Positions 2,491 to 43,331 of a stretch of DNA of 64,000 bases are shown here, piece after piece; positions within the stretch are counted from its first letter, which is position 1; each line of letters opens with the position of its first letter. The translations under genes were made by a program, and so were the position numbers. The stretch is from positions 62,001 through 126,000 of IMG/VR virus record IMGVR_UViG_3300048571_000088. One strand, given 5' to 3'. The notes under the pieces were generated by a model. The model was not told the origin of the DNA. It saw only the letters and a program-made list of their open reading frames with translations, and made no database searches.

Positions 2491-2535
2491 AAGAGATCCT
2501 TTTTAAAAAGGGGAAAGAACTTCCCTCCAAATTAA

Positions 2536-2727
2536 TCAACCAATACTATAAGTAGCACCACGCTTATTAACACCAAGTCGCTCCAATTCTTGTTGAATTA
2601 CAGAATATGGGACAACTGTAGTACCATTAACAGGATCAGTGCAAAGACCTTGTACAAAACATTGTGTCTTACGACCATTTGCTTTAATAGTAACAGCAGT
2701 AAGTTTTAAACGAGGATTGGTGTTCAT
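2536..2727 (-). CDS. hypothetical protein (likely start MNTNPRL at 2727)
   Basis: AAGGA SD before ATG 2727; the start in the ORF track overlaps the upstream gene. Confidence 0.55.
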   Translation of the reverse strand: MNTNPRLKLTAVTIKANGRKTQCFVQGLCTDPVNGTTVVPYSVIQQELERLGVNKRGATYSIG

Positions 2728-2744
2728 AACAATTTCCTTAGTGA

Positions 2745-3173
2745 TTAAGGTGCAGTGAAGGATAAAAGAGCTTTTGCATGTGCAATTGCATCTTCTTTGG
2801 TGGCGTGACAAATACCTTTTTCGATATAATGATTAGTCAGTGTTGGATTACGTCGATATGAAAGCTGAAAACACAAATCATCTGAAATGAGAGTTACAAT
2901 ATAATACTTATCTTGACAGTGTGAGAAAGAAGTTAATGGTTTTTTAATTTTATGACCATTAATTTCAATGTACACTGGTTCAGAAGGAGAAGTTTCTCCA
3001 ATATAATATTCTGTAGTAATATCCCAACATGGCTGGTATGGCTTTTTAAGTTTAATCCACAATTGATTATCCGGATAAAATGACTTATACCAGACAGTCG
3101 TGCCTTCTGGATTAATAGCCCATTTCATAATTAAGTCGTAGTGGGGATGTTTTGTGTTCATATTATTTTCCAT
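2745..3173 (-). CDS. phage protein of the 'I.G..VP.PL...G.CH.T.E.A..HA.AL' family
   Basis: C-terminal motif shared with 12964..13587, 25235..25651, 25656..26078 and 36179..36625. Confidence 0.7.
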   Translation of the reverse strand: MENNMNTKHPHYDLIMKWAINPEGTTVWYKSFYPDNQLWIKLKKPYQPCWDITTEYYIGETSPSEPVYIEINGHKIKKPLTSFSHCQDKYYIVTLISDDLCFQLSYRRNPTLTNHYIEKGICHATKEDAIAHAKALLSFTAP

Positions 3174-3384
3174 AGAGTTTAAAATACCTGTAAGTATCTT
3201 TAGTTAAAACAACTTTCATTTGTTTTGCTTCTTTTCTTAATCTAGTCATTTGATATTTTCTACATAGAAAAGAAGAAATGTTTTTAAACTTGTTTGGAAA
3301 ATAAGCACTACTTACACCAATAAATGCAATGGAGATAGAAATTAAAAGCAGGATGCTTAGTTGTGTTACGCTTGGATCAGTCAT
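3163..3384 (-). CDS. small membrane-anchored protein
   Basis: N-terminal hydrophobic helix. Confidence 0.55.
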   Translation of the reverse strand: MTDPSVTQLSILLLISISIAFIGVSSAYFPNKFKNISSFLCRKYQMTRLRKEAKQMKVVLTKDTYRYFKLYGK

Positions 3385-3622
3385 TAAGGTATCTTTTTAA
3401 ACCAGTAAGGGTTTGAATTGGTATTGCAACTTTATGAGAGTAGCCATCAAGATCAATAAACCCAAGTTTTTTATTATATTCAGAAATAATAAAAAACCCT
3501 TCACTACCTCCTAAACGATGATCTTTACAATCTAAATAGCAATCACAAAGAATAAAATTTTCTTTTTTAAGGGAGCATTTTAATTTTTTGTGTTGTTTTT
3601 TAACTTCATCTTTTAAACTCAT
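3377..3622 (-). CDS. hypothetical protein
   Basis: 81-aa ORF in operon. Confidence 0.55.
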   Translation of the reverse strand: MSLKDEVKKQHKKLKCSLKKENFILCDCYLDCKDHRLGGSEGFFIISEYNKKLGFIDLDGYSHKVAIPIQTLTGLKRYLND

Positions 3623-3625
3623 ATT

Positions 3626-3874
3626 TTAAATCTCCATTAATAAATACTGATAAGCGTTTACTAAATCTTCAGCATCCTGCTCAGAAAAAAAGGGATAGGA
3701 ATATTTATATTCTTCCCGCGAGTTTAAGACTACAAAGTAAACATAGTTTTCAGTGTGCCTTCCTACTGATTCGACATGTTTTAAAGTGGGATGTAATAAG
3801 TAAGCATAGCCTGCTTTTTCATGGATGTCTACAATACTAGCGTAAGCTGCTTCACGACTTTTGAAACTCATCAT
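3626..3874 (-). CDS. hypothetical protein
   Basis: 82-aa ORF in operon. Confidence 0.6.
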   Translation of the reverse strand: MMSFKSREAAYASIVDIHEKAGYAYLLHPTLKHVESVGRHTENYVYFVVLNSREEYKYSYPFFSEQDAEDLVNAYQYLLMEI

Positions 3875-3887
3875 AATTTATACTCTT

Positions 3888-4073
3888 TTACCTAGTATTT
3901 AAAAACTCTTCTAGACTGTTAAGCCAATCTTTAAAATCTTGTTTATCAAGGAATTCTGAAGGCTCGTCTGGCCATGAAGTACTAATGTCTTTATCAACAT
4001 AAGCTTCAAAAGACTCCAATTCATCCAAAAGTTGTTTTTTAAACTTTCCGAAAGACATATTTGATTTACTCAT
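3888..4073 (-). CDS. hypothetical acidic protein
   Basis: 61-aa ORF with ATGA-type coupling. Confidence 0.55.
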   Translation of the reverse strand: MSKSNMSFGKFKKQLLDELESFEAYVDKDISTSWPDEPSEFLDKQDFKDWLNSLEEFLNTR

Positions 4074-4456
4074 ACTTTTAACTCATTTGGTTCGAAACAA
4101 ATTCCATCTTCAATTGGAAAAACAATTTCTGCACGATGTAAAGTTTCAAAGTAACCTACATAAGGAAGCTCGTAGGTTGTATCTTTAAAAATAAAATAAT
4201 GTTGTGTTGCATAAGTTTTTGTCTTATCAAACCAAGGTTCATTATAGTATTTATCTTTAATTTGCTGCGGTGTAGCTTTTGGATGACTTTTAAAAAGTAT
4301 CGAATCTAGTTCTTGTACAAAGCAATAATGTGCTTTAAGAGTACGAAGAAATTCTTTAGCTTCTTCTAGAGTAGGAAAAGTTGCAAAATTATCTTCAGTT
4401 TTAGAATAAGAAGAACAGTCAGTACCTGTTTGATATTGAATTGTAATTGAATACAT
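4070..4456 (-). CDS. conserved-looking large-phage hypothetical protein (Y.TG...EAK...HY...GYFE.L..AEI)
   Basis: 128-aa ORF; motif recalled from large-phage hypotheticals. Confidence 0.65.
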   Translation of the reverse strand: MYSITIQYQTGTDCSSYSKTEDNFATFPTLEEAKEFLRTLKAHYCFVQELDSILFKSHPKATPQQIKDKYYNEPWFDKTKTYATQHYFIFKDTTYELPYVGYFETLHRAEIVFPIEDGICFEPNELKV

Positions 4457-4457
4457 A

Positions 4458-4718
4458 TTATTTAAATTCTGGATTTTGTTGGTAGCCTAAAAGTATACAC
4501 TCTACTGTACCAATAACATAAGAAAATGATTCAACTTTAGGACGAGTAGGAAAAACAAGAGAACAAAATGTAGAGCGACCTTCTACAGGTAGAATTTGTA
4601 CACCGTATGTTTCTTGTAGTTGAATTACATCATTACCATTAAAAATATTAATTTTACGTGTCAAGAATTTATTTAATTCGTCTTGAAGGTTTAACATTTT
4701 TTGTTCAATTTGTTGCAC
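4458..4718 (-). CDS. hypothetical protein
   Basis: 86-aa ORF. Confidence 0.6.
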   Translation of the reverse strand: MQQIEQKMLNLQDELNKFLTRKINIFNGNDVIQLQETYGVQILPVEGRSTFCSLVFPTRPKVESFSYVIGTVECILLGYQQNPEFK

Positions 4719-4740
4719 AGTAATTACTCTTTAAATATGA

Positions 4741-4774
4741 ATGAGAGAGTTATAGTCAAGTATAACTCTCTCAT
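4741..4774. terminator. 14-bp-stem hairpin, probable terminator or processing site
   Basis: ATGAGAGAGTTATA-gtcaag-TATAACTCTCTCAT between genes. Confidence 0.6.
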
Positions 4775-4783
4775 GTATTAGAT

Positions 4784-5731
4784 TTAATCTTCAATAGTAG
4801 TGATTAGATCATCAGGTACTGATGTAATTAGATTACTTACAAATTTAGGAATCTGTAAAGTACCAATTGCTTTTGAATACCCTACAACAAGAACTGCTTT
4901 TGAAATTGCAATAGCTTTCTTGTCTGTAGGTTTTACAGCGGTAAGAATTACAGCAATACCTGAAGCGACTACAAGATCAGCTAAAGCATGATCAATAAAC
5001 ATAGCAGCAATTGGAGGTAGATGTGGTTTAACCATTTCTTTTGTTGCTTGGATAGCAATCTTACCTACTTCTTGCAGTGAAGCTTGAATTACTGCATCTT
5101 TGTGTAGGTTTGGTTGCGAAGCAATGCTAGTGGTTGCAGTATTAAGCAGAGTGTTCATTTTGTTTGTTTCCTGTTTGTTTGAGGTTGGTAAAACAGAGGG
5201 TTGTTTGAGATTTTTAGATATAAAATCTAAAATAATATTAGTATCGATTTTGTCGTGTTCTGGGAAATCATACCTAGAGCTAGTCTCCCAAAGGAGCTTT
5301 TCATTTGTTGGAAAATATGTTTCTTTAAGTGTATTTAAAAGAAATTTTTCGGATGTGTATATACCACTATTTCTACAATGTTTTTTAATAATTGTTAAAA
5401 TAATTTCTAGTGTGTTTAAATCAAAAGGATCTTTAATATGAAAAAAGAAATCTTTTCCTATCTTTCTGCCTAGTTGGTCATACGTACTTAAATAGTTGCT
5501 TAAACTTAGTATTATACTGTTTGTTGACTTTACGCCTGAGGGTGTACAGGATGTATGACCTAAAACAAACAAACTTAAAAGTTCTTGTTGGAAACTTAAG
5601 TTACTTTTGCCTTCTAAAGCAAAATAAAAAGGTTCCTCAGTCGCGAGATAATACTTGTTAAAAGCTTTAAAAGTCTCTACTGAAAAACAATCAAGCTCAA
5701 ATTCTTTAAACAGTGTTAGTAAAGTTGGCAT
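4784..5731 (-). CDS. hypothetical protein with a hydrophobic C-terminal module; possible internal in-frame start (MNTLLNT)
   Basis: 315-aa ORF; internal CAGGA-N9-ATG. Confidence 0.7.
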   Translation of the reverse strand: MPTLLTLFKEFELDCFSVETFKAFNKYYLATEEPFYFALEGKSNLSFQQELLSLFVLGHTSCTPSGVKSTNSIILSLSNYLSTYDQLGRKIGKDFFFHIKDPFDLNTLEIILTIIKKHCRNSGIYTSEKFLLNTLKETYFPTNEKLLWETSSRYDFPEHDKIDTNIILDFISKNLKQPSVLPTSNKQETNKMNTLLNTATTSIASQPNLHKDAVIQASLQEVGKIAIQATKEMVKPHLPPIAAMFIDHALADLVVASGIAVILTAVKPTDKKAIAISKAVLVVGYSKAIGTLQIPKFVSNLITSVPDDLITTIED

Positions 5732-5733: not shown

Positions 5734-6162
5734 TTACACTCCTAAATAAGCTTTAATTTCTGCATAAAGCTCTGTGTTGTATTCCCAAAATTCAGAATGA
5801 GTTTCAGTCAGAAGATAGGAGTAGTGAAGGAACTGAAGATAAGTTCCTTCAGGGGTTAAAGTTTTATTTTCAGGGAATAAACACTCTGTACCTACTGGAA
5901 GAACATAAGCATCGACTAAAATAGGATTATCAATAGCTGAATAATCCATAATAGAGAATTTAAGTTCAGTTGGAATACTACTGATGTCTACTCCAGTTTC
6001 TTCTAAGACTTCACGATTTAAAGCTGCGCGTGAATTTGAGTCTGTTTCATCAATCTTTCCTCCCACAAGTCCAAAATTGAATTCATTACCTTTACGAGTA
6101 ATACTAAGAATTTCTCCTTTAGCATTAGTAATAAAGAGTACGACAGCAGACGGTTTGATCAT
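5734..6162 (-). CDS. Nudix hydrolase
   Basis: Nudix box GGKIDETDSNSRAALNREVLEETGV. Confidence 0.9.
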   Translation of the reverse strand: MIKPSAVVLFITNAKGEILSITRKGNEFNFGLVGGKIDETDSNSRAALNREVLEETGVDISSIPTELKFSIMDYSAIDNPILVDAYVLPVGTECLFPENKTLTPEGTYLQFLHYSYLLTETHSEFWEYNTELYAEIKAYLGV

Positions 6163-6174: not shown

Positions 6175-6465
6175 TTATGTGTTACTTTTGTGGTGTTTTA
6201 AAAATTCCATAATATTAGAAAACACATCTTTATGGTTTGAAGGTAGTTTGTGCTTATTAGGCTGTGACTTGCATGTATTAGTGCGATAAATAGCAAGGCC
6301 AGCACAACGACTACCAGAATGAACGTGGCATTCAACAATTGCATCGGAATGACAAATACGCGAATAGTGCTCTGGTGTAGAACCACCTAACCAACCTTTA
6401 AGTGAATCGCGGCGCATTGGGCAATCACTACAAGGGCTGGTTAATTGTTTACTGGCTGCTGACAA
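6175..6465 (-). CDS. Cys/His-rich putative Zn-binding phage protein (PCxxCPxR...CH...CAG)
   Basis: Motif pattern; start uncertain (an SD-positioned ATT lies about 27 nt upstream). Confidence 0.65.
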   Translation of the reverse strand: MSAASKQLTSPCSDCPMRRDSLKGWLGGSTPEHYSRICHSDAIVECHVHSGSRCAGLAIYRTNTCKSQPNKHKLPSNHKDVFSNIMEFLKHHKSNT

Positions 6466-6603
6466 AGTACCAGAGATAATTAACTTATTAATTTTAAACT
6501 TCCTTTTTTTGCTTTAAGAATTTGAAATGCTTACACTCAATATAGTTACCGTCAGATATTTGAATAAAAGCACGAGAATCAATACTAATCCACATTCTTT
6601 GTA

Positions 6604-6729
6604 TTACACCGATTTGTCTACGTTACCTTCGTTTGCGTTATAATCAGCGACGGGTTTCTCGGTGTTTTTATAGCGCTTTAACAGCCAACTAATATATTTA
6701 GCACTGCCGTCAATGTTTTTTGGTTTCAC
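6604..6729 (-). pseudogene. 41-codon remnant of a lytic transglycosylase (SLT) C-terminus
   Basis: Manual translation VKPKNIDGSAKYISWLLKRYKNTEKPVADYNANEGNVDKSV matches the SLT NI.G..YL..LL..Y....A.YNAGEG pattern. Confidence 0.55.
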
Positions 6730-6730
6730 T

Positions 6731-7144
6731 TTACGCTCCTTCAATGTCACGGATAATACCCACCTTGCGGTGGACTCCTACATACCATGAATGATCATTG
6801 CCAGTACGACAGTACACACCGCCATCAAAATTCACTAGCAGACTTTCTTTTCCTACATACCGCACAATACCTGTAGCGCCAATCTCATACCAATTAGTTG
6901 GTTTGCTTAACGTCACAATACGGTCACCAACCTCTGGCTTTTCATCTGACAGCTTGATTGATGTTGGTTTTAGTTGAACATTACCTTTAAAAAAACCATC
7001 ATAACCATCAATCTTGATCAGCACCCTGCCACACCCCCTCAAACTATTGGACATCACCGTACCATACTTATCTCGATGCATCTTACTGTCACAACATTGT
7101 TTAACCTTTATACGCAAACCTTTACGCAGATGAGTTACTTTCAT
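6731..7144 (-). CDS. hypothetical protein, two small beta-barrel (SH3/KOW-like) modules
   Basis: MKVTHLRKGLRIKVK and KPEVGDRIV starts; paralog array. Confidence 0.65.
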   Translation of the reverse strand: MKVTHLRKGLRIKVKQCCDSKMHRDKYGTVMSNSLRGCGRVLIKIDGYDGFFKGNVQLKPTSIKLSDEKPEVGDRIVTLSKPTNWYEIGATGIVRYVGKESLLVNFDGGVYCRTGNDHSWYVGVHRKVGIIRDIEGA

Positions 7145-19792: not shown

Positions 19793-20377
19793 TTATACCT
19801 GATTTGACTGTTTTAGTTTTATCTCTAAAGTCATGTACATCTTATTCGAGCAAAAACTATTTGGTGCCCTGTGGAAATCTGACACACTATAGAGAAAACT
19901 ATCATGATTTTTTAATTCATTGTCTTCACAACTTACTAATAAACTAATACTGTTAGTATTATATTTTGAAAAGTCACATCCTGCATATGTAGCACCCATT
20001 ATTATAATACTGTCTTCGTATGTGTAACTATCATGTAATATTTCACTCGTTAAGAGTTTAATGTATTCATTTTCTTTAATGACTTTTTGAATGTTTTCTG
20101 ATTTATGTTGTTCATAATTAGCCGCAGGGTCATCAAGATAAATATTTTTAATTCTTAAATTATTTCTAAGATTGTTTAAACTTAGTGCTAGATCTATACT
20201 TAGTTGTTCCGAGCTTGGTAATATAATTACACTATTAGGTTTTAAATGGAAAAGACCTTCTTTATTTGTTTTATTAATAACTTGTATAATTACTGATAAA
20301 ATATTCTCTGCGTATTCGATTGAAGTTGTTTTTTCTATTTCTGATTCAAATTTATTAAGTAACATATTATTAAACAT
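19793..20377 (-). CDS. hypothetical protein
   Basis: 194-aa ORF coupled to the upstream gene. Confidence 0.65.
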   Translation of the reverse strand: MFNNMLLNKFESEIEKTTSIEYAENILSVIIQVINKTNKEGLFHLKPNSVIILPSSEQLSIDLALSLNNLRNNLRIKNIYLDDPAANYEQHKSENIQKVIKENEYIKLLTSEILHDSYTYEDSIIIMGATYAGCDFSKYNTNSISLLVSCEDNELKNHDSFLYSVSDFHRAPNSFCSNKMYMTLEIKLKQSNQV

Positions 20378-20783
20378 TAGTTTCTTCTTTAGTTAAAGTT
20401 ATGGTTAATACAAAAGTTGTTGTTAATAACTCAAAAAAGTTATTACGAATTTTTGAAGGAATTTCTTCTGAATCTAGTATCAGTGTGATAGCGTCTTCTT
20501 CACCTAATTCATCTTTTAAATAATCTAAATTTAATGTATCTAATTTATTTATATCTATTACAGTGAGTCTTGATTTATTTATGCTTAATTTTTCGGAGTA
20601 ACGTTGTTTTTCAGAACCTTCTAAATATTGTTCTGGATTATTCGTAAGTATGAATGTACTTACATTTTTCATTTTAAGCATTTGAATATATTTTCGTATA
20701 TAAGTAATAAAATCTTTTTCTGCTGGTTTAATGTTTAAGTTACTTTTAATAAATTGTATATTTTTGTATGTATATCGATACAT
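20370..20783 (-). CDS. hypothetical protein
   Basis: 137-aa ORF with AAGGA SD. Confidence 0.65.
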   Translation of the reverse strand: MYRYTYKNIQFIKSNLNIKPAEKDFITYIRKYIQMLKMKNVSTFILTNNPEQYLEGSEKQRYSEKLSINKSRLTVIDINKLDTLNLDYLKDELGEEDAITLILDSEEIPSKIRNNFFELLTTTFVLTITLTKEETNV

Positions 20784-20803
20784 GTTATTTATCCTTTATG
20801 TTA

Positions 20804-22121
20804 TTATTTAGATATTTCGTATTTATCTTCTAGCCAATTTTTTAAAAAGGTTCTCATTCTTTTGGAAGGTATATACAGATTAATCTCTTCATTGTTTCTT
20901 ATTGCTGATCTCCAAATAAACTGTACCATCTCAGATATAGCATATACATCTTCTTTAACACTAAAGCCCCTAGCTGATGAGGCTTTAACTAATTCAGGAT
21001 TAGGGTAAAGATTAAGAAGGTAAGCTACTGTATGTCGATCTCCATAGTTATTAGTAGCTTTAGTATTCATTGGTAACCATTCATTTGAATAATTGTTGAC
21101 ACCGTTCTTCTGTACTCTTGTTTTACAATCTTTAAAACAAGTCCAGAGTAAATCTGATTTTTTACATTTGGCTTTATTTCTAATGTAATTGTCTAAGTTA
21201 GCAGAAAGTGTGTCTTTGACTGCTGTTTGTTTGCAGTTAGTAGAAGATAAAGCAGATTCTTTACTGCCTGTTTCATTTAATTTCCCTCTTAAAGTGTCTT
21301 CGTAGACATTAATTAGATGTTTTATTTCTGAAGGTTTTTTACCAAATCTGATAACTTCATAATCTAAGCCATGAGCTTTTAAGTAAGTAGCCATGATATT
21401 ATCTTCGAACATGTATGTGGCAATCCATACTTCTTTAAAAGCTTTTAAAGCATTAATTGCAAGTTCCCATATCACTACTTTTCCGTCTATCAGCATTAAC
21501 TGCCCTAAGTCACACAAAGTAGCAAATGTTTCGTAATAAGTATCTTTAGTAGTATCTCTTCCGTTAGAAGTGTCTCCATAATTTTCTCTGTGAAATTTAA
21601 GAGTAATCCCGTCTGTTTCTTCTAGTGTGATCCAACCATTATCAAACATAGCTTTTATTTCTTTCTCATTGTAGACATCATAGATCTCATACACACTTAA
21701 CATCTCATCAATTACTAAGATATAATCTCTAGCCTGCTTAAGTATTTCTGGTGTTAAGTTAACAAAGAGTTGATGAGTACTTACTATGTTATCATTATTC
21801 TTTAATAACTGAGGAAGAGATTCAGCCTTACCTCCTTTATTCGAGAAATAAGGATGTTTGAACACTCTATCTTTAAGAGGAGTTTCTTCTGCTTCGTTAT
21901 ATTGGTACAGTAAAGAAGAATCATCACTCTCTACAATGATCGGCCTTTTATATAAGTCTTCAGGATCATACACTGTTCCTGCAATTCTGTGACACTCTGT
22001 GAGTAGTGGTGTTATAAATATGTACTTTTGAGACATGTCAGAGTTTTTAATATTTTCAATAACCTTAGTTGTTTTGCCTGACCCGCATCATTGCATCGTA
22101 CACTTTAATGTTTGTTTTCAT
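20804..22121 (-). pseudogene. SF2 helicase-like / origin-binding protein, +1 frameshift at 22085 inside Walker A
   Basis: ATG 22121 with SD gives MKTNIKVYDAMM-(extra C)-GSGKTT, then LVIDE (Walker B) and EMVQFIWRSAIR; paralog of 23251..24576. Confidence 0.8.
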
Positions 22122-22183
22122 AGTTGTAATTCCTTAGTTAGTGGGTTGATGCACACAAGAGAGGTACACACCATTACCTCTCT

Positions 22184-22212
22184 ATTATAACAAGTTAGAG
22201 TTAACTTGTCAA
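22184..22212 (-). promoter_or_regulatory. perfect consensus sigma70 promoter
   Basis: Minus strand TTGACA-17 nt-TATAAT. Confidence 0.85.
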
Positions 22213-23164
22213 CTCCCTCTCTAGCTAAATCGTATTGAGAGAAAAACCTCTCTAGCTAAATCAAAAAAACCCTATTTTTTAGCGCTCTAATTGAGATTAA
22301 CCTTAAGAAGAATAAGTTTAAAAATATAAAAGAGTAGTTCTAGTTTACTCGTACTCCCTTTCGGTCGTAGTCGTAAACTCCAAGATTCTTTCTTAGCTTC
22401 CTATCGTTTCCAGTCATATATCTGTGTACTTCGTACCCATCTATATTTCTTACCACTTATAGTTATTATTGTAGTAGTACTTAATCTTTAAAAGAAAGTA
22501 AGTAAAGAGAAGAAGGTACTAATACTTAATAATGTCTAGGAAAGATCTATGTAGTTTCTTATTTCTTATAGCTAGTATTTGTACATCCATCTTTTTTACT
22601 TATCTTTTCATAGGTATGTACTTTTCTTTGCTAAGTAAGTATTTTTATTAAATGTTTATTTCTTAAAAGGTACTAAGAAACTATAGGAAGGAAAGAGAAA
22701 ATTAAAGAATTTCTTGTTACCAGATTATTCTTACTCCTTCCAGTCGTACTCATAATCTTACAGATATTTATCAAATAGGTACCTAATCTGAAGAGAATAC
22801 TAGGAAACAAGAGGAGACCGAACCGGAGGTTTGGGGTACGAGTGTTTAGCTAGCTGGAAGCTAGACAATAAGATACCTTTCAAAGAGAACTTTAGTTTAC
22901 GAATGCGATGCGTCAGCGGAGCAAGAGTAAACAGAGAACTACTCTTTTAATGTAGGGCTTTAAAAAATAATTCTTTTAAAATTAAATACTTGGAAGCCAT
23001 TTTACTCAATTTCTAGGAGATTAGACCCCCCCCCCTTAGGGCTTTCCAGGGAAAGGTTCGTAAAATCAAATACTTGGAAGCCATTTTAGAGAATTTATAG
23101 GAACATATAAACATTGATGTTTATATGTATGCAGTTCTCTGTTTTATTCCTATGAATAAACTTA
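22213..23164. other. candidate replication origin (AT-rich non-coding region with direct repeats)
   Basis: About 1 kb without ORFs; 16-bp repeat at 22216/22247, 21-bp repeat at 22984/23068, C10 run at 23026-23035; flanked by divergent helicase-like genes. Confidence 0.55.
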
Positions 23165-23193
23165 TTGCATTTTCCTAGGACATATGTTATATT
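23165..23193 (+). promoter_or_regulatory. sigma70-like promoter
   Basis: TTGCAT-17 nt-TATATT upstream of 23251. Confidence 0.65.
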
Positions 23194-23250
23194 AAATAGT
23201 AAGCTACTAAAAATGTCTTTGGTAGCATATTAAGGAGAGCCACACAACAG

Positions 23251-24576
23251 ATGACTAAAATTACAGTAATAGATGCAATAATGGGAGCAGGAAAGAGTTC
23301 TTATATTACCCATCTTATTCATAAAGCACCACATGATCAATCTTTTCTTTACATCACTCCGTTACTAAGTGAATGTCACAGGGTAGCTTGTACTACTTCA
23401 ACAAGATCTAAAGGAGAACCACCAAAGAGAGATTCTAATAATAATATTATCTATACAGAAACTACTAATCCTAATGCAGTAGATATAAGATATAGAAAGT
23501 TTAAACACCCTGAAGTGAAGAGTAGTGGAGGTAAGATTGATAGTTTAAAATATCTAGTTGAGCATAAGCATAATATTACTTCTACCCACTCATTACTCCT
23601 AAGACTAGAAGCGCAAAAAACAGAGTTATTTAATCTTAAAGATTATATATTGATAGTAGATGAAGCTTTAAATGCTTACTCTGAATATGATCAACTCAGT
23701 GCTTATACTGTTAAGCAACAGATTAAGAATGGATTATTTAGTATAGATCCAGATGGGTTTACACTTTTATTTCATCCAGAAGTTATAGGTACAACAGGGA
23801 GTATAGAAGGTTTAACTCAGTTAGAAGAGTATGCTGAACTTTGTAACAGGAGAGTATTACTTTTTGTGGGAGGTAAGATTATAGTTTGGGAGTTAAGTCC
23901 TGATTTATTAAACTCATTTAAAGAGGTGTGGTTTTGCACGTACCAATATAAAGGTACAGTATTGGATACTTATTTAATATCCAATGGATTTCAAGTACAG
24001 ATTACAACAATACCTACTAATAAGAAACCTTCTGACTATAAGCCTCTTATTACTATTATTGAAGAAGATAAACTGAATGCTATAGGCGCAGAAAAATACT
24101 CTTTAAGCTACACTGCTATGGAAGAGGTAGAAACTTTAGAAGTACTCAGAAAGAATTTGATGAATTTTTTTATCACTAAATGCTGTAACGCTACAGCGAA
24201 AGATCGTATCTGGACTTCCTATAAAGAGAAAAGAGATGTTAATAATAGAATTATTATTGTTAATAAAGTTATAGCAGGCAAAAATTACTTTAAACAATGG
24301 TTACCATTTAATACTAAAGCAACTAATGAATATTCTAATTGTCACAACGTAGCTTACCTTTGTAATATATTTCTTAATGTAGATATTAAGACTGTTGCTA
24401 GTAAGAAAGGTCATCCAGTTGATGAAGACATGCATGCGTTAAACGAGATGATCCAGTTTATCTGGAGATCTGCAATTAGAAACCAAGAACCAATTAATTT
24501 ATATATACCTTCTGCAAGAATGAGAAATCTCTTCAAGAGTTGGTTAAATGATGAGTACGAAATTAAGGAACTCTAA
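23251..24576 (+). CDS. SF2 helicase-like / origin-binding protein
   Basis: DAIMGAGKS Walker A, LIVDE Walker B, EMIQFIWRSAIR motif VI-like. Confidence 0.85.
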   Translation: MTKITVIDAIMGAGKSSYITHLIHKAPHDQSFLYITPLLSECHRVACTTSTRSKGEPPKRDSNNNIIYTETTNPNAVDIRYRKFKHPEVKSSGGKIDSLKYLVEHKHNITSTHSLLLRLEAQKTELFNLKDYILIVDEALNAYSEYDQLSAYTVKQQIKNGLFSIDPDGFTLLFHPEVIGTTGSIEGLTQLEEYAELCNRRVLLFVGGKIIVWELSPDLLNSFKEVWFCTYQYKGTVLDTYLISNGFQVQITTIPTNKKPSDYKPLITIIEEDKLNAIGAEKYSLSYTAMEEVETLEVLRKNLMNFFITKCCNATAKDRIWTSYKEKRDVNNRIIIVNKVIAGKNYFKQWLPFNTKATNEYSNCHNVAYLCNIFLNVDIKTVASKKGHPVDEDMHALNEMIQFIWRSAIRNQEPINLYIPSARMRNLFKSWLNDEYEIKEL

Positions 24577-24583
24577 TCTAAAC

Positions 24584-24615
24584 AGAGAAGTTTGCAACTT
24601 ACTACAAACTTCTCT
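24584..24615. terminator. hairpin between convergent genes
   Basis: AGAGAAGTTTG...CAAACTTCTCT. Confidence 0.65.
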
Positions 24616-24622
24616 CAACAAC

Positions 24623-25168
24623 CTAGTTAAACTTTCTGAAGGTTAAAGAAATTCTTCCACCTTTATGTACCTTCTTTTCTATTCCATGTGTATAGAGTTT
24701 TTGACATCCAGCACCCATTACTAAGACATCTCCATCTTTAAGAGGAATACTTACAACTTCACAGTCTTTCTTATTCTTTAGTATGAAATCACAACTATCT
24801 CCTAAAGATACAGATACTACTACTGGATCTATACCTAACTCTCGTTCATCATCTGAGTGTTGAGAAATCCCTGCATTAGCACCATCTGGATAGTAGTTTA
24901 ATAAGCAAGCATTGAAACTCGTACCATTTTGCTCATTGATCACTCCCATCAATTGTAAGAGACGTTTATCCCAAGGTTGAGCTTTCATTACTAAACCACT
25001 GAAAGCATAATCTTTTCCCATGCTACAGACACCTCGACTAATCTGTCTTCCGTAGAAGGTAGGATATACCCAAGGTACTGTCTTTATGAGACGTTGTAAG
25101 TGGTGTTGAGTATTCTTAACTTTTAGCTCAGAAAAGAATACATCACACTTGGATACTAAGGAAGTCAT
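24623..25168 (-). CDS. alkB: AlkB-family 2OG-Fe(II) dioxygenase
   Basis: NACLLNYY, HSDDE (HxD), THGI and RISLTFR motifs; likely start MTSLV at 25168. Confidence 0.9.
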   Translation of the reverse strand: MTSLVSKCDVFFSELKVKNTQHHLQRLIKTVPWVYPTFYGRQISRGVCSMGKDYAFSGLVMKAQPWDKRLLQLMGVINEQNGTSFNACLLNYYPDGANAGISQHSDDERELGIDPVVVSVSLGDSCDFILKNKKDCEVVSIPLKDGDVLVMGAGCQKLYTHGIEKKVHKGGRISLTFRKFN

Positions 25169-25234
25169 ATTTCTCTCTCTGTTGTAAACACACATGTATG
25201 ATTTGATAATACAATCCAAATCATACAAGTTTAT

Positions 25235-25651
25235 TTACTCAGTTACACCTAGTAAAGAAAGAATATACATACCTTTGATAGTTGCAGCTTCTTTACTTTT
25301 GTAGATTAAACCAGCCAGACAAAGATGGGCTTTTGCTAAGCTACTACTGTTCCTTGTTTGAGCAATGGTTGGGTTAGTGATATCTACAATCCAAACGTCA
25401 CCGTAGACATCCTCAATATTTCTTATCGGTTTGACGTTAACTAGATTCCCTACGTATTCATACTCTGGGAGCCGTTCTTTCTTACATACTAGCACCTCAA
25501 CGTCATAAGGATCTACTGTGAGTGCAGAAAGGTCACCGAACGTAATCTCTTCAAAAGACAATTCATTCTTTTTACGAATGAAAATACCCTTTGAAGTATC
25601 CTTACAATGAATAATGATTGGATCGATGAAAGGATGGGTTTGTTGTGTCAT
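25235..25651 (-). CDS. hypothetical phage protein (dispersed paralog family)
   Basis: KPI...VWIVD...GLIYKSKEAA. Confidence 0.65.
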   Translation of the reverse strand: MTQQTHPFIDPIIIHCKDTSKGIFIRKKNELSFEEITFGDLSALTVDPYDVEVLVCKKERLPEYEYVGNLVNVKPIRNIEDVYGDVWIVDITNPTIAQTRNSSSLAKAHLCLAGLIYKSKEAATIKGMYILSLLGVTE

Positions 25652-29601: not shown

Positions 29602-30294
29602 TTACTCCATGTTTGCTACGGTAAGCATAACGATTGTGTGACAGAAATGATCACTTCCTTTACAGTAGCAACCTAATACCTTTCCTTTCATACTCTTGAT
29701 CTCAGCCTTAAAAGCAGGATCAAATAGAGCATGAATGAAATCAAAGCGATGTTGAGCTACAGCTTCATCAACTGTATCAACTTTAACAGTTCTTGGAATA
29801 CCAGACAGATGAGTATAAGGATTACCATACTTAGATCCCCTTCCTCGGCCGCAGTATATATCACATTTCTCTTTCTTTCCTACGTTTGCCATCAAGTGAT
29901 AATACTTGTCCTGATTAGCTTGCATAAGACGAAGAGAGTCTTTAATCCAAATACGATAAACTTCTGTAGCTTGGCAAGCACTTCCTGTCTTGCCAAAGAT
30001 ATCAGAGAATCCTCGATACTTACGAATTGTCTTCAATAAGTCAGGATTCTCTTGGAAGTATAAATCCCACAGAGAAGAATACAGCTCTCGTACCTCTTCC
30101 TGATTTATAGCTTGTTTCCCTTTGGCTTGAGAAACACTTAGTCCTGTTGTACCATCAGAGAATACCTTTGCAGCTTGGTATATCTCTTCGATTGATTTTC
30201 CATTGTAAGCTTTAAGTCTTGCAAAAAACGCCGAGAAAAGCTTATTCCCTTTCGAACTGCATTCTAACATTGGCTTGAAACCATGTTGTAACAT
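29602..30294 (-). CDS. NADAR-like domain fused to a DUF4326 domain (start MLQHG at 30294)
   Basis: SIEEIYQAAKVF (NADAR EHYYQAxK-like); C-terminal YCGRG.GS.YGNP...KGKVLGCYC...CH. Confidence 0.7.
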   Translation of the reverse strand: MLQHGFKPMLECSSKGNKLFSAFFARLKAYNGKSIEEIYQAAKVFSDGTTGLSVSQAKGKQAINQEEVRELYSSLWDLYFQENPDLLKTIRKYRGFSDIFGKTGSACQATEVYRIWIKDSLRLMQANQDKYYHLMANVGKKEKCDIYCGRGRGSKYGNPYTHLSGIPRTVKVDTVDEAVAQHRFDFIHALFDPAFKAEIKSMKGKVLGCYCKGSDHFCHTIVMLTVANME

Positions 30295-30374
30295 GACACA
30301 TCTCCTAACGATGATTAACAACTCATATACATGATGGAACTCAATTAAGAATTCCATCAAGTCTATAAGCTTAC

Positions 30375-38413: not shown

Positions 38414-38733
38414 GTGTCAGCTTTCTTAGCCTGCCGTAGTACACGGTAATCAGAATAAGCCTCTTCGTTCTCTTGAACCCATTCTTTCAGATTCATCAGC
38501 TTACCTTCCAAACCACCACGGAATGTATCCGCAGTAATCTGAACTTGCAAACGTACATCTGGTTGAGTGTACTCTGCAAATGGATCACAGAGAAGAGATG
38601 CTACGTGATCAATCTCAGCTTGGTCTTTCTTTGTCAGACTCACCTTAACCTTCCGTCCGTTACTCAACAGTCTCATGGAACGGGTGACTTCAACAACATC
38701 ACCAACAGCTTGACGAGTATTCTTGAACAACAT
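38398..38733 (-). CDS. hypothetical protein, paralog of 40175..40513
   Basis: KNT...VGDVVE.T.SM.L..NGR...QIT.DTFRGGL.GKL.NLKEW. Confidence 0.75.
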   Translation of the reverse strand: MLFKNTRQAVGDVVEVTRSMRLLSNGRKVKVSLTKKDQAEIDHVASLLCDPFAEYTQPDVRLQVQITADTFRGGLEGKLMNLKEWVQENEEAYSDYRVLRQAKKADTWEDI

Positions 38734-38947
38734 GGTGATACTCCTGAGATTTTACAAGGGATCTCTTCATTAACCCTTTTTTGCTATTCCTATAAAATCC
38801 ATAAAGAATCTCATAGGAATATCAAAGCAGTTTATACTCTTACTAAGGAGTACCTAATTATGAATGAAAAAGGTACCTGTTTTTATGTACTAGAGACAGG
38901 ATTATGTGAACCTTTCAGTTCACAAACTCTAGATAAGTGGCATATAC

Positions 38948-39469
38948 TTATCTGATATATAAATGTATAAAGTTAGGTGAAAGTTTCTTGAACTGTGTCA
39001 AGAGGGATTCAATATGATCCCAAGCCTCTTCACTATAAGGCATTTCAGTATTTAGAATTACCTCGGAAGATTTACCTTCAAACAAGTGCATAATTAGCTT
39101 AATGTTACCTGACACCATTTGATACATATAATATTTTACAGTGAAGTACTCATTTTTATAAGTATTATTCATGATGGAGCCTGTACTCTTTTCGTACTTG
39201 TGGACTCCACCAGTTCTTTTACATATATTCTTTTTTCTTGGATACTTATCTCTGAATGTACGTTTAAACTCCCGTGTGGACAGGATCTCACCTGTTTCAC
39301 GAATGACAATGGTATGGAAGGTGCGATCTTTATAATCAGCAACTTCCGCCATTGCCGGAGTCATCTTGTACGCCTCTGCCGGTTTATTCCAGCGATTTGT
39401 AAAAGCTAACTCGTAAATGGCGCCAAGATCAACTGACAGTTGTCTTGAGTGTTGTGTGGTCATCGTCAT
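38948..39469 (-). CDS. hypothetical protein
   Basis: 173-aa ORF, AAGGAG SD. Confidence 0.7.
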   Translation of the reverse strand: MTMTTQHSRQLSVDLGAIYELAFTNRWNKPAEAYKMTPAMAEVADYKDRTFHTIVIRETGEILSTREFKRTFRDKYPRKKNICKRTGGVHKYEKSTGSIMNNTYKNEYFTVKYYMYQMVSGNIKLIMHLFEGKSSEVILNTEMPYSEEAWDHIESLLTQFKKLSPNFIHLYIR

Positions 39470-39796: not shown

Positions 39797-40012
39797 CTAT
39801 TCGCCTGCGTACTCTGCTTCCTCAAGTACGAGGAAGACAATCTGGACGAGGCCTAGAGCCTTATCATGCTGCTCCAGACGATATTCCACATCCTCTGGGA
39901 TCTTCCCGAGGATGGTGTCATCCCCGATGTAGAAGCAATCAGAAGCAGGGATAACAACACCTGCTTCTGCCAGTTGGGTACGGATCGCTGCAGCATTGGT
40001 TTGCGCGTTCAT
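39797..40012 (-). CDS. hypothetical acidic early protein
   Basis: AGGAG SD, own leader. Confidence 0.65.
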   Translation of the reverse strand: MNAQTNAAAIRTQLAEAGVVIPASDCFYIGDDTILGKIPEDVEYRLEQHDKALGLVQIVFLVLEEAEYAGE

Positions 40013-40174
40013 GTATTTTCTCCTAATAGATGGGCATGACCCCAGGAAGGTTTGAGAGTTTCAACTGCTCTCACAGACTCTATATTATTTAGTGTGCATT
40101 AAGAGTTCGCACAGACTACAAGAGTTAGGTACACTCAATATCACGTACCTTCGTCCTGTAGGACTTTCTGTCTA

Positions 40175-40513
40175 TCAGCAGTTGTACTCAACCCAGGCTT
40201 GGCTGTACGCAGCTTGTCGTGCGTCGTGCCACTCTTTCAAGTTCACCAATTTCCCCGTCAAACCACCCCGGAAGGTGTCAGAGGTGATCTGAACTTCCAG
40301 TGGCGAATCCGCCGGTGTCTTGAATGTCACAAACCCACAGTTGTACATCTCGGACACCGAGTCCAGCAAGTCGCGGTCTGACTTGCTAACAGCTACGGTA
40401 ACGGGGCGGCCATTGAAGGCCAACTTCATTGAAGAAGTTATTTCGACCACGTCCCCAACTCTCTGAGTTGTATTCTTGTACATGATGTATTCTCCTTGAT
40501 TGATGGGCAGCAC
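40175..40513 (-). CDS. hypothetical protein, paralog of 38398..38733
   Basis: Shared motifs; likely start MYKNT. Confidence 0.75.
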   Translation of the reverse strand: MLPINQGEYIMYKNTTQRVGDVVEITSSMKLAFNGRPVTVAVSKSDRDLLDSVSEMYNCGFVTFKTPADSPLEVQITSDTFRGGLTGKLVNLKEWHDARQAAYSQAWVEYNC

Positions 40514-40595
40514 CCCAAGCTTAAAACTTCTTTACATATAAAACCCATAAGAGAGTCTCATATGTAAAGAAGGGGCGCAGGAGCACCCCAACTTT

Positions 40596-40808
40596 TTAAC
40601 ACACCTTCAATTCGTCCCCACAGTCAATACAAGCATAATACTCGTATTGATTTGTCATCCGGGAGAAGACACAGACGTGTCCGCAATGACAACGGAAGAA
40701 GTTACCCTCTTCGTTGATCTCTGCTACGGTCTGCACCTCTCCTTCGAGCTTTGCAGGTATTTTGGTGTACATGACGTTAGCCATATAGTAAAGTAACTCC
40801 ATTAACAA
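40596..40808 (-). CDS. small Zn-finger protein
   Basis: CHCGH...CIDCG. Confidence 0.6.
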   Translation of the reverse strand: MLMELLYYMANVMYTKIPAKLEGEVQTVAEINEEGNFFRCHCGHVCVFSRMTNQYEYYACIDCGDELKVC

Positions 40809-40840
40809 TGTGAGAAATTAAAAAGGTTTCTCACTTACCT

Positions 40841-41092
40841 TTAAACAATCTCAGTGAATGACTTTTCAGTCGTATCATAAGAGAATGTCTTAATACCTTG
40901 ATGACGGAGTGTCTGTAGTGCCTCATCAGCAGTACCAGCACTCATTACCACATTTTTCACCCCGAAGGATGAAATCTCTTCGGCGAACTTAATCGCTGCT
41001 TCAGAAGAATCAAGACGAACTTGATCCATCGAGACCACTTCCACCTCTACAGCAGAAGAAATTTCAACACCAAGAAAAACATAGATCTTCAT
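40841..41092 (-). CDS. hypothetical protein
   Basis: 83-aa ORF. Confidence 0.6.
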   Translation of the reverse strand: MKIYVFLGVEISSAVEVEVVSMDQVRLDSSEAAIKFAEEISSFGVKNVVMSAGTADEALQTLRHQGIKTFSYDTTEKSFTEIV

Positions 41093-41103
41093 AATGACCC
41101 CCC

Positions 41104-41460
41104 TTAGTACTGATAAGCAGTGAGTCGGAGCAGATCTTCAACCACTTCAGAATCAATTACATCTGAAGGGAGAAAACATACATCCCACCCTTGTACACCT
41201 ACAATCTCCCCGTACTTAATATGTAACAGGGAAACATAGGCTCCGTAATTACGAGCAAACTCTTTCTTCTCAGCTACAGAGAGGTCAGAGTAGTACTCAA
41301 AGGTCATAGCATGAAGCCATTGACCTTCTGCTACAGAATTACCTACTGTAGCATCTGGAGTCTTAGAGAAACGAACAACGTAAACATCGTTCAATTTCTC
41401 ACCAACACCCCAAGGATGTCCTATTGCGGAGTCCATCCAGTCATGGTCATGAGCGTACAT
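41104..41460 (-). CDS. hypothetical protein
   Basis: 118-aa ORF, GGAG SD. Confidence 0.65.
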   Translation of the reverse strand: MYAHDHDWMDSAIGHPWGVGEKLNDVYVVRFSKTPDATVGNSVAEGQWLHAMTFEYYSDLSVAEKKEFARNYGAYVSLLHIKYGEIVGVQGWDVCFLPSDVIDSEVVEDLLRLTAYQY

Positions 41461-41556
41461 AACAGTACTCCGACAAAAAGAATCAAACTTATAAGTACTA
41501 ACCAGGAATACTTATAAGTTTGATTGAGGGTTTCTTATAACCCTCAAAATACCAGC

Positions 41557-41808
41557 TTAGCTATGATTAGGGTGTATAGCGGTTGATCCGTCAGTGGCAG
41601 TCACTTGTACGTACCACGAGCGAGGACAATCCTCTGCATCTGCCATCACTTCGTAAGGCACGGCAATCGCCTCGCATGTGTCGACGAACATGGATTGATG
41701 AATGACGGCGGCATCCTTGTAGTCGCCGTCGAATCCCATGAAGTACTCATCATGGTACTTCTGCGCCTCTACTTCTATTTTCGAGACCAACTGCTCTGCC
41801 ATGTTCAT
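41557..41808 (-). CDS. hypothetical acidic protein
   Basis: 83-aa ORF, GGAG SD. Confidence 0.65.
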   Translation of the reverse strand: MNMAEQLVSKIEVEAQKYHDEYFMGFDGDYKDAAVIHQSMFVDTCEAIAVPYEVMADAEDCPRSWYVQVTATDGSTAIHPNHS

Positions 41809-42127
41809 ACTACATCTCCAAGACCAAAGAAAGGTGGTCAGCCTGTAATACTTCTTTATAGTTTATATCCATAGAAGAATACAATCTATAAAGAAACATG
41901 AGGTGAGAGAAACTGATCAAAAAGTAACCAGTTCTCTCACCTCCTCCTTAGATTCATCCTACCAACATCCAGTAGAACAAACCTAAAAATAATAAGAAAA
42001 TAATAAGAACAGATAACCATCCATTATTACTTTCTATCTTATCCTGATAATTCTTCATAAGAACACCTAAGATTAAGAAAGAGACTAATACATTTAATTA
42101 TACAGGCTGTATTCCCACCTGTAACCC

Positions 42128-42523
42128 TTACTTTACTGACATCAAGTACTCAATAACGTCAGCGAGGAGTTGTGGGTGCTCCTCAAGTTTGATCATACGG
42201 TGTCCGTACTCAACGAAGTCTTCCAACTTCAAAGATACGAGTGCAGCAGCACGCTCAACAATACCTTCATAGGAATTGCTGTCCACGACGTCTCCGTGGA
42301 AGTAGACTGCCATCGCAACGATAGCAAATTCTACTTCCATCTCTGCATGTACAGCAGAACTGCACCCATGTACCAGACGGTCAGACTGCACGTACACATT
42401 AAGCATACGTGCAGAAGTCCCAAATCCGTATACGAATTTATCATATACGGCAATTGGGGTATCCCCTACTACAGGGGCGTACGGGTCGTTGGTGACCCCA
42501 GCCATGTATCCCATATTGGACAC
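42128..42523 (-). CDS. hypothetical acidic protein
   Basis: 131-aa ORF, AAGGAG SD. Confidence 0.7.
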   Translation of the reverse strand: MSNMGYMAGVTNDPYAPVVGDTPIAVYDKFVYGFGTSARMLNVYVQSDRLVHGCSSAVHAEMEVEFAIVAMAVYFHGDVVDSNSYEGIVERAAALVSLKLEDFVEYGHRMIKLEEHPQLLADVIEYLMSVK

Positions 42524-42650
42524 TCCTTAACTCTGTGTGAGATTCAAAGGTTCTCACACTCTACCTTATTACATACTCTATATGTACTAAACACTAATAC
42601 ACATAAGTATATAAGATCAGTTTATACACTTGATCAGGTGTTGATCTGTT

Positions 42651-43331
42651 TCAGGAATGATCCCAAAACAGATCTGCGAACCACTCGGCAGTTGCTTGGA
42701 AGCTGCCATCTTCCTTACATCCGGCAATGTCTGCGCGGATGGCAGCTTCGGCTGCTTTGTTCCGGCCGACAACTCGCTGCCCTTTACGAGCAGCCATGTA
42801 GCTAGTGACAGCCGCAGGGACTGTCCATCCAGCTTTCTTATCTTCCCACTCGCACAGGAAGAGCTTGTAGCCTTCTTCGCGAGCAGCAGTTTCCACCCCC
42901 TCTGCTACTACAGGGGATGATGAAGGGATCACCACTTCTTGGTGATCTTTTCCTGCTGCCATTGCTTCGAATTTCTCGACAATGGCAAAGAATGCCTTCC
43001 GAGACACAGCAATTTCAGTCGTGTCATACTTGGACTCGCTAGTGCAAGCCCATAAGGTGAATCCGACTTTCCAGCCTGTGTCGGATTGATCACAAGGGAC
43101 ACTGATTTGCATCCCCTGTGCGAAGGTGAATGGTGCATTGTGATCAACAATGCGCACCTTGTTGCCCAGCATCTCTGCTGGCGTCAAGGCCATTACAGCC
43201 TCATTTGTTGCCAACACGGCAACAAGTTTGGCAGCTTTTTTGGCCGCCAGTTCGTCTTCGGTCGGCGGAGCAACATAGCTCTCATCCGCCACCCGACAAC
43301 CATAACGGTCATCGTACTGAAAATATGCCAT
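42651..43331 (-). CDS. hypothetical early protein
   Basis: 226-aa ORF, GGAGAATACATTATG leader. Confidence 0.7.
   Translation of the reverse strand: MAYFQYDDRYGCRVADESYVAPPTEDELAAKKAAKLVAVLATNEAVMALTPAEMLGNKVRIVDHNAPFTFAQGMQISVPCDQSDTGWKVGFTLWACTSESKYDTTEIAVSRKAFFAIVEKFEAMAAGKDHQEVVIPSSSPVVAEGVETAAREEGYKLFLCEWEDKKAGWTVPAAVTSYMAARKGQRVVGRNKAAEAAIRADIAGCKEDGSFQATAEWFADLFWDHS

Follow-up and report, generated by a model that had tools for sequence, protein, structure and literature searches.

We propose that two genes of the YonV family in a freshwater phage form an outward-facing pair that shares a divergent promoter region, and that the left-hand member of the pair is expressed through a +1 frameshift, an explanation of the locus that we consider the best one and hold with moderate confidence. 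The pair lies in a 64,000-nucleotide stretch of DNA (the window) that comprises bases 62001-126000 of the 242,588-bp virus record IMGVR_UViG_3300048571_000088 from a freshwater metagenome. The two ends of this record overlap, which shows that the assembly is complete and circularly permuted, and the genome has a GC content of 33% (0.333) and six tRNA genes. The locus corresponds to genome positions 82.8-86.6 kb, and no alternative genetic code was invoked in its analysis. The most interesting result is a break in the reading frame of the left gene at a CGG codon inside the segment that encodes the P-loop.

In a preliminary description made from the sequence, the two genes were given as open reading frames (ORFs) at 20804-22036 on the minus strand and 23251-24576 on the plus strand. 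Both ORFs exist, but the one on the left is only the part of its gene that follows an internal ATG, without the P-loop, and the true start is at 22121 and not at 22036. The frame of this ORF is open up to 22087 and encodes GSGKTT there, but it has no start codon in that region. The start is supplied instead by a leader in a different frame (frame 0; 22086-22121, minus strand), which consists of the ATG at 22121 and 11 further codons (MKTNIKVYDAMM) and has a ribosome-binding-site-like AAGGA upstream. The leader fits the N-terminal consensus of the family (..IKVYDAMMGSGKT) as well as the intact relatives at loci L178 and L176, and it joins exactly to the main part of the gene (20804-22084, minus strand, +1 frame, 426 codons and a stop), in keeping with the family consensus ..IKVYDAMMGSGKTT, if a single base is skipped. 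The break is located at 22083-22085 (minus strand), where an extra C at 22085 gives a frame-0 CGG, and skipping it yields GGG-TCA-GGC-AAA-ACA, or GSGKT. The window reads ATG-ATG-C-GGG-TCA where L178 (84% identical) and L176 (81%) read ATG-ATG-GGT-TCA, a difference of one C, and the main part of the gene is 84 and 81% identical to the intact relatives P0021 and P0013. Without a shift, frame 0 runs for seven codons beyond the leader to a TAA at 22065-22067 and specifies a peptide of 19 residues. CGG is the rarest sense codon in the long ORFs of this phage (49 of 53,387 codons, or 0.92 per 1000), and a slow codon with a frame-0 stop nearby is found both here, with the TAA six codons on, and at the related loci L214 and L024, where the stop directly follows the CGG. 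The sequence of the break is identical in Logan contigs from three further samples (X2, X3, and X4, which with the record make four), and so it is not an assembly error. Downstream of it, 56 of 60 family-conserved residues are kept, two more (V and D) are in the leader, and there is no second lesion in the 1281 nt of the gene. The automatic call of a 410-residue ORF masks this structure, a caveat for annotation in general, as several database clusters that start just past the P-loop likely have the same problem, and the clusters P0049, P0080, and P0081, which start just after it, may be further cases of frameshifting. The cluster P0156 likewise begins right behind the P-loop.

Comparable breaks are found elsewhere in the family, which was surveyed in 160 related loci from viral and genome collections. 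The loci L214-216, L024, and L182 carry a C insertion two codons later, in the context GGY-TCT-C-GGN-AAA. The proteins of L214, L024, and L182 are 73-90% identical to one another, with 0.57-1.29 synonymous substitutions per synonymous site (dS), and their post-break ORFs have ratios of nonsynonymous to synonymous substitution (dN/dS) of 0.10-0.16, while most of the differences between their leaders are silent in frame 0. Moreover, the invariant GKT of L214 and L024 is not preceded by any start codon in the +1 frame. This pattern of selection is not that of a dead gene. In a maximum-likelihood tree, L214, L024, and L182 form one clade (support 100/99) and the left copy of the window lies in another (100/99) together with unshifted sisters, and the C insertion has therefore arisen at least twice in the family. 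When viral contigs were screened for both frameshift signatures, the second site was found only in the contig of L024 and the first site in none. A precedent is provided by the mitochondria of glass sponges, in which +1 shifting takes place at the extremely rare CGG_(A) and a C or T is inserted just 5' of a GGA codon (PMC5009743). By analogy with these cases, we think that the break in the left gene is probably a site of programmed +1 frameshifting, although our confidence in this is not high. Translation of the left copy would start at 22121 and the leader would be read in frame 0; at the CGG, the ribosome would skip C22085 and continue into the P-loop and the remaining 426 residues, and ribosomes that fail to shift would stop six codons after the CGG. 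Such a corrective shift would limit the amount of full-length left protein. A one-base insertion before a glycine codon of the P-loop has thus arisen twice in one helicase family and has been kept under purifying selection in one clade. It would represent a compact and testable recoding signal (X-CGG-N) and might link the expression of a phage helicase to the supply of a rare tRNA-Arg.

The two genes are paralogs, as had been described, with 160 of 418 residues identical (38%; E 5e-95), and the shared motifs quoted for them (ITPLL.ECHR, W..FNTKATN.Y, and EM.QFIWRSAIR) are present in both. Both match phrog_2467, a group of unknown function (E 4e-80 for the left and 2.5e-68 for the right protein), and the precomputed annotations place PF27199 (YonV_C, named for YonV of the Bacillus phage SPbeta) on all homologs and on the protein of the window. 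An older copy of Pfam-A that lacks the PF27199 model gave only a weak ResIII hint for both proteins, and a DNA search also matches SPbeta yonV. The two ORFs are deeply diverged members of the uncharacterized YonV family, and the very long branch that separates them in the tree shows that they did not arise by recent duplication. The right gene (23251-24576, plus strand) is intact and encodes 441 residues with the P-loop GAGKS. Its product shares 91% identity with P0003 and 89% with P0004, and the dN/dS values against loci L003 and L004 are 0.06-0.07. The family is widespread, with confirmed members in 529 stretches of viral contigs and 209 of genome contigs. Its relatives in viral contigs had to be found by a profile search, as a search of these contigs with a single protein gave none. 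No published function was found in the literature for yonV or the YonV family, sequence searches of the PDB with single proteins and with profiles gave nothing meaningful, and PADLOC and NCBIfam had no matches.

The structure is more informative. An AlphaFold2 model of the right protein built with 58 homologs (mean predicted local distance difference test score 88.8, predicted template modeling score 0.85) is a superfamily 2 (SF2) ATPase with two RecA-like domains, which bears out the SF2-like nature proposed initially. The best Foldseek matches among solved structures are CasDinG, XPD, and DinG, at E 1e-6. VIA-align gives a Z score of 16.0 to CasDinG (8e2w; root mean square deviation 5.4, 360 residues aligned) and 14.8 to XPD (2vl7), followed by INO80/Snf2 and FANCM at about 13, and more than 150 SF2 chains match at a Z score of at least 8. 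The viral structural neighbors are all uncharacterized. The first RecA domain of the model contains insertions at about residues 47-94 and 140-215. The P-loop lysine (K15) and the Walker B pair of D137 and E138 are invariant in the 58 sequences, as are Q402, R406, and R410 of motif VI, and the Walker A and B motifs (GAGKS on the right, GSGKT on the left after the +1 shift), the second RecA domain, and the motif VI arginines are all as found in SF2 enzymes. In one sub-clade (proteins P0112, P0114, P0115, P0117, P0119, and P0120; loci L032, L033, and L101) GSGKT is replaced by GNSKT or GNNKT, and the family as a whole therefore varies at the second P-loop glycine. Assignment to the XPD/DinG sub-family is soft, because Snf2/INO80 and FANCM score nearly as well. 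From this fold and the genes nearby, we favor a role for the family as DNA helicases or translocases in phage DNA replication, recombination, or maintenance.

Between the true starts of the two genes lies a spacer of 1129 nt (22122-23250), the largest ORF-free gap in the entire genome when ORFs of at least 80 residues are counted. It was initially described as AT-rich, but its GC content of 0.326 is close to that of the two genes (0.325 and 0.315) and the genome (0.333). Its left part (22122-22324) is homologous, at approximately 74-75% identity, to the DNA that precedes the left-type gene in L176 and L177. Both genes had been assigned sigma-70 promoters of their own, and the one on the left (22184-22212, minus strand; TTGACA-17-TGnTATAAT) is perfect, with 12 of 12 matches, and is one of only two perfect consensus matches in the genome. 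It is kept in L176 and is promoter-like in L004. The 16-bp direct repeat that had been noted here is exact (22216-22231 and 22247-22262), and its two copies are situated just upstream of the left -35 element. Three copies of CCTCTCTA are found within 22177-22262, one at the transcription start (22177-22184) and one inside each 16-bp repeat, and the 8-mer occurs nowhere else on this strand of the 242-kb genome. L176 has TAGATAA-type motifs at the same three places that differ from CCTCTCTA. Because the motif changes in step at all three, we infer that the copies behave like operator sites of a co-evolving regulator, and a dedicated DNA-binding protein would use the sites that flank the consensus promoter. 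A hairpin with a 9-bp stem, recognized by eye and not folded separately, is present at the start of the left transcript (22158-22183, minus strand), and a different hairpin-forming sequence occupies this position in L176.

The right part of the spacer (22944-23250) has homologs in L003 and L004, where they precede the right-type gene. The 21-bp repeats reported for the spacer are only the core of a 42-nt repeat (88% identity) with two units 84 nt apart (22953-23105, plus strand), each consisting of TAGGGCTTT, about 15 nt, and TAAAATyAAATACTTGGAAGCCATTTTA. The C10 run between them (23026-23035) is present as described and is the sole run of seven or more C or G in the genome; it reads C9 in samples X3 and X4. 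The units are kept in L003 (two units) and L004 (three units with a period of 114) at about 75-85% identity, together with the C run, and a search of viral contigs for the C-tract motif gave no matches. They are followed by a perfect 12-nt palindrome with a 2-nt spacer (23103-23128), which is absent from L003 and L004, and by the right promoter as read from the sequence (23165-23193, plus strand; TTGCAT-17-TGnTATATT, with an extended -10). This promoter is weaker than that on the left and was not flagged by the scan, yet its position is conserved, with TTGACA..TATACT opposite it in the alignment for L003 and TTGCAA..TATAAT for L004. On this side, then, conserved units and a unique, length-variable C tract would lead into a conserved extended -10 promoter. 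Beyond the right gene, a hairpin with a 14-bp stem (24584-24615) separates it from the convergent AlkB-like gene (24623-25228, minus strand) and is likely a two-way terminator.

The middle of the spacer (22325-22943) is lineage-specific. It contains no ORF of more than 58 residues, has an approximately 160-nt stretch of 22% GC at 22560-22720, and lacks homology to L003, L004, and L176 beyond a short block. It is also the most polymorphic part of the locus, with more single-nucleotide polymorphisms (SNPs) than the flanking genes in sample X4. An imperfect inverted repeat closes it, the left arm (22327-22379) matching the right arm (22894-22949) at 45 of 56 positions, and the right arm abuts the region shared with L003 and L004, which begins at 22944. 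The stretch between the promoters would accordingly consist of about 620 nt of fast-evolving DNA. In the Logan contigs of the other samples the assemblies break repeatedly in the spacer (at 22332, 22400, 22680-22780, and 22886-22998) and are unbroken through the left gene, which fits either micro-diversity or the inverted repeat. The possibility that the spacer is a multi-copy mobile element was ruled out, as it is single-copy in the genome. A tRNA scan found none in the locus, and GTAC/GGTAC is enriched only about 3-fold in the spacer. The conserved left-type block gave no matches in a first search of metagenome contigs and then 28 chance matches without a YonV gene.

The relatives also indicate how the locus may have been assembled. 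Loci L003 and L004 have only the right-type gene (89-91% identical). In L004 the single YonV gene has an upstream region of 1.6 kb with a similar layout, in which a left-pointing promoter (TTGACA-17-TATAAG, 82% identical over 39 nt to the left promoter of the window) is followed by an unrelated middle, three C-tract units, and a right-pointing promoter. Genes for proteins of 137 and 194 residues follow the left copy in the window, and their homologs in L004 (84% nucleotide identity) follow its right-type gene, with the AlkB-like gene on the other side. We infer that, relative to L004, the block of spacer and right gene has been inverted and the left copy stands where L004 has a gene for 97 residues, a conclusion drawn from gene order and not from a reconstruction. 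Two YonV copies are found in only two of the 160 loci, which belong to one lineage, the other 158 being single-copy; in these two, L084 and L088 (6001-7200 and 7251-8456), the paralogs are adjacent and in tandem rather than head to head. Long gaps upstream of the gene are enriched without being universal: one of at least 800 nt is present in 13.5% of the loci, whereas only 4.9% of the remaining gaps in these loci are that long, and the family-wide median is 150 nt. Relatives of the left copy are located behind SbcCD-like genes in L182 (gap of 20 nt) and L214 (43 nt, after SbcC), a context of DNA metabolism that supports the role suggested above. Among ten neighboring proteins of the window, Pfam matched only DUF4326/NADAR. 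This protein is encoded near the locus at 29602-30360 (minus strand) and also in L003 (141-845), L004 (2061-2759), and L176 (2753-3448), and in these relatives PcfJ-, DprA-, AlkB-, and SSB-like genes are found alongside it.

A different view of the left copy is that it is a recent pseudogene, in which case the extra C would be an ordinary mutation, only the right copy would work, and at most a protein without a P-loop would be made from the ATG at 22036. This is possible but, in our estimation, doubtful. The insertion before the P-loop is known as AUG-CGG-G from one lineage only, the nearest relatives, L178 and L176, being unshifted; neither a slippery P-site codon nor a prfB-like Shine-Dalgarno stimulator was seen there by eye; the intact second paralog could relax selection on the left copy; and broken homologs occur elsewhere, for example at L185 (NZ_CP063960.1, 5821-7079), where the gene on a 208-kb Clostridium botulinum plasmid is split into two ORFs (5821-6066 and 6198-7079). 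A pseudogene does not readily account for the long stretch of the left gene free of a second lesion, for its retention of nearly all conserved residues, or for the same allele in all four samples, nor for an insertion that generates precisely the codon that is rarest, immediately 5' of one for Gly, the same signature as in the selected site of L214, L024, and L182. There are nevertheless several points that count against the frameshifted, divergently transcribed pair that we propose. The evidence at the shift site of the window is by analogy, and an inactivating mutation of recent date is compatible with a site that is confined to one lineage, albeit identical in four samples, and that lacks both slippery codon and stimulator. 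None of the RNA runs screened holds the region. The cellular role is deduced from the fold and the neighbors, and the neighbors of YonV genes are heterogeneous, the commonest of them, a YonO-type RNA polymerase, being absent from this phage. That neighbor raises the further idea that single-subunit RNA polymerases of the YonO type use YonV proteins as accessory factors, which would then serve transcription and not replication. In 29 of about 150 loci, for the most part in phages and prophages of Bacillota (such as L143, 4760-7480, and L007, 11583-14111), a YonO-like gene (Pfam RdRP PF05183, E 2.6e-16) lies one to three genes downstream of the yonV-like gene and on its strand, and in SPbeta yonV and yonO are within 5 kb of each other. 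A profile built from these neighbors finds SPbeta YonO (E 4.6e-79) but nothing in the phage of the window, the Acinetobacter phage-plasmids, the Macrococcoides plasmids, or L003, L004, L008, and L176. Hence the association with YonO is lineage-restricted, and we give a general function of this kind very little credence.

The spacer, for its part, is best read as a divergent promoter region rather than a demonstrated origin. The preliminary description had suggested an origin served by two initiator helicases, perhaps one per direction, and we consider it unlikely that the spacer is a replication origin with the YonV proteins as its initiators. The helicase-like fold and the presence of several repeats in the longest non-coding stretch of the genome are in line with such a function. 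So are plasmids and phage-plasmids of Acinetobacter and related contigs, in which about 1 kb of non-coding DNA precedes the yonV homolog and contains three copies of the palindrome AAGACAAGGTTTTGTCTT and, at a distance of some 180 nt from the start, a perfect DnaA box (TTATCCACA). These elements have parA and parB next to the gene and lack an annotated Rep, the 37.8-kb phage-plasmid p23TQ-37k being one that lacks it. The corresponding gap in L009 has two DnaA boxes and TTTAGACAA arrays in both orientations. The spacer of the window, however, has no DnaA box within one mismatch of TTATCCACA and no excess of AT over its flanks, the one 22% GC stretch notwithstanding. Its repeats comprise two 16-bp copies and two 84-nt-spaced units, with an 8-mer core present three times that brackets the promoter and transcription start, and they would act like promoter-flanking operators and not like iterons. 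The GC skew has no turning point at 22-23 kb, the cumulative minimum of the window being at about 50.5 kb, although phage skew mostly tracks transcription and is therefore weak evidence. The PolA-like gene (genome 193 kb) and the Toprim primase-like gene (203 kb) are about 110-120 kb away, the model has no separate sequence-specific DNA-binding domain, and the left copy needs recoding to have a P-loop. A dual-initiator arrangement in particular is not supported for this window, as a single copy is the norm in the family and L004 has a similar spacer architecture with one gene. Some close relatives (L182 and L214) have hardly any upstream gap, and the family-wide median gap is short. Even p23TQ-37k has a weak AAA-like candidate of 424 residues. 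The spacer middle (approximately 22270-22970) could alternatively encode a large non-coding RNA with extensive structure, which the long-range inverted repeat would close. Its lack of an ORF and a fold energy far below that of shuffled sequences (z of -5.3 on the plus and -6.2 on the minus strand for 22260-22980) are what such an RNA would show, and the upstream region of L176 likewise has several long inverted repeats. The fold is strong on both strands because of the closing inverted repeat, however, and equal stability points to a feature of the DNA. In addition, a scan of 20000-25500 on both strands with Rfam 15 gave nothing at E up to 1, no promoter could be assigned to an RNA of the spacer middle, a search found no further copies of the spacer, the sequence is not conserved in relatives, and of the eight SNPs in 489 nt in sample X4, six are at unpaired positions and none is compensatory. 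An RNA of this type is therefore most improbable.

An origin role for YonV outside of this window is an open lead, and the family is a concrete candidate on those Acinetobacter elements that have no annotated Rep. The Acinetobacter and L009 loci are mutually related and count as one or two observations, and one such A. baumannii record has been classed by others, according to supplementary material, as a circularized genomic island (PMC9927589 supplement). In complete p23TQ-37k the extremes of the GC skew (17.1 kb and about 36.9 kb) do not coincide with the region upstream of YonV, and the skew is uninformative. A search for a hidden Rep in p23TQ-37k and the Macrococcoides plasmids gave only winged helix-turn-helix (wHTH), MerR, and weak AAA matches. 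The latter plasmids, L014 (pMiCAN82c, 10.5 kb) and L184 (p19Msa0936-1, 11.9 kb), are small, have no annotated Rep, and share a yonV-like gene at the head of an operon of about six small genes together with MerR-type and 280-residue wHTH proteins. In L009, a type IV CRISPR-Cas module with a DinG-like helicase, Csf3, and RAMP (608-4403) lies directly upstream of the yonV-like gene, from which a 1-kb gap (4403-5447) separates it. Taken to its furthest, this lead would give phage-plasmids, Acinetobacter elements without a Rep, and some phages a new class of initiator helicase in the YonV ATPases, associated with an origin in the long upstream region; the jumbo phage studied here would have two non-interchangeable cassettes of initiator and site back to back, one of them throttled by a +1 frameshift in its own P-loop, and the conserved, length-variable C10/G10 tract would be an R-loop- or G-quadruplex-prone element for a DinG-like enzyme. 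We regard this as a long shot.

Several features of the genome lie apart from these questions. The right YonV gene was said to be the only substantial plus-strand gene in the left 50 kb, which is essentially true, as the other plus-strand ORFs of at least 150 residues (38473-38955, 42170-42805, and 46794-47270) have a TTG start or overlap longer ORFs on the minus strand. Three large ORFs of 416, 405, and 1163 residues at 52765-58745 (plus strand) match tail-fiber and minor-tail PHROGs and mark a switch to rightward transcription at about 50-52 kb, which coincides with the cumulative GC skew minimum of the window. A GC-rich island extends over approximately 40000-50000, and especially 46179-49613 (minus strand), with values of 0.44-0.51 against the genome mean of 0.33, a strong contrast in composition, and contains an ORF of 1144 residues without a PHROG match. 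ARAGORN predicts a tRNA-Phe at 595-668 (minus strand) with its anticodon AAA at an unusual position (32) and, outside the window, two tRNA-Met(CAT) genes that are unusually long (86 and 89 nt) at genome positions 29813-29898 and 44461-44549, with the anticodon at position 37. None of the six tRNAs of the phage is a quadruplet-decoding tRNA. Two AUG codons precede the shift site of the window, and we draw no link between them and these odd tRNAs.

How YonV compares with known systems depends on which of its properties is considered. With the XPD/Rad3/DinG branch of helicases (CasDinG 8e2w, XPD 2vl7 and 3crv, and S. aureus DinG 9ii8) it shares the two RecA-like domains with insertions in the first and the conserved Walker A, DE pair, and Q and R residues of motif VI, with VIA-align Z scores of 14-16 over 320-360 residues. 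It differs in that no more than 10-14% of the aligned sequence is identical, YonV is a far smaller protein (about 440 residues), and the family does not have the four conserved cysteines of an Fe-S cluster, C198 alone being conserved in at least 90% of sequences, so an XPD-type cluster is not supported. Some DinG and CasDinG proteins likewise have no Fe-S cluster, and its absence leaves kinship possible. SPbeta YonV belongs to the same family as judged by both profile and DNA matches, is of the same length class (410 residues), and has the N-terminal VIDSIMGSGKT, but is only about 25-30% identical to the proteins described here, and its gene stands alone between stem-loops.

Compared with the iteron-type origin (oriV) of plasmids and its rep gene, the locus is similar in having a helicase-like gene beside a long, repeat-bearing non-coding region, a likeness that in the Acinetobacter elements extends to the DnaA box, the repeated palindromes, and adjacent parAB, whereas in the window each repeat is present only twice, and both a DnaA box and an AT-rich unwinding element are lacking. 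Herpesvirus UL9 is an SF2 origin-binding helicase with a separate DNA-binding domain, to which nothing in the YonV model corresponds. Bacteria and phages offer few natural examples of +1 frameshifting. The systems in which corrective or programmed +1 shifts take place (CGG_(A) and UGG_(A) in glass-sponge mitochondria, yeast Ty3, and E. coli prfB) differ from the breaks reported here in that the latter are in phage genes of bacteria, lie within the P-loop coding segment of a helicase-like gene, and are known from sequence, and neither the Shine-Dalgarno stimulator of prfB nor a slippery P-site codon has a visible counterpart. What the YonV genes have in common with these systems is the extra base 5' of a GGN glycine codon, the very rare CGG in frame 0, the early frame-0 stop, which in L214 and L024 follows directly, and a full-length product that requires a +1 shift.

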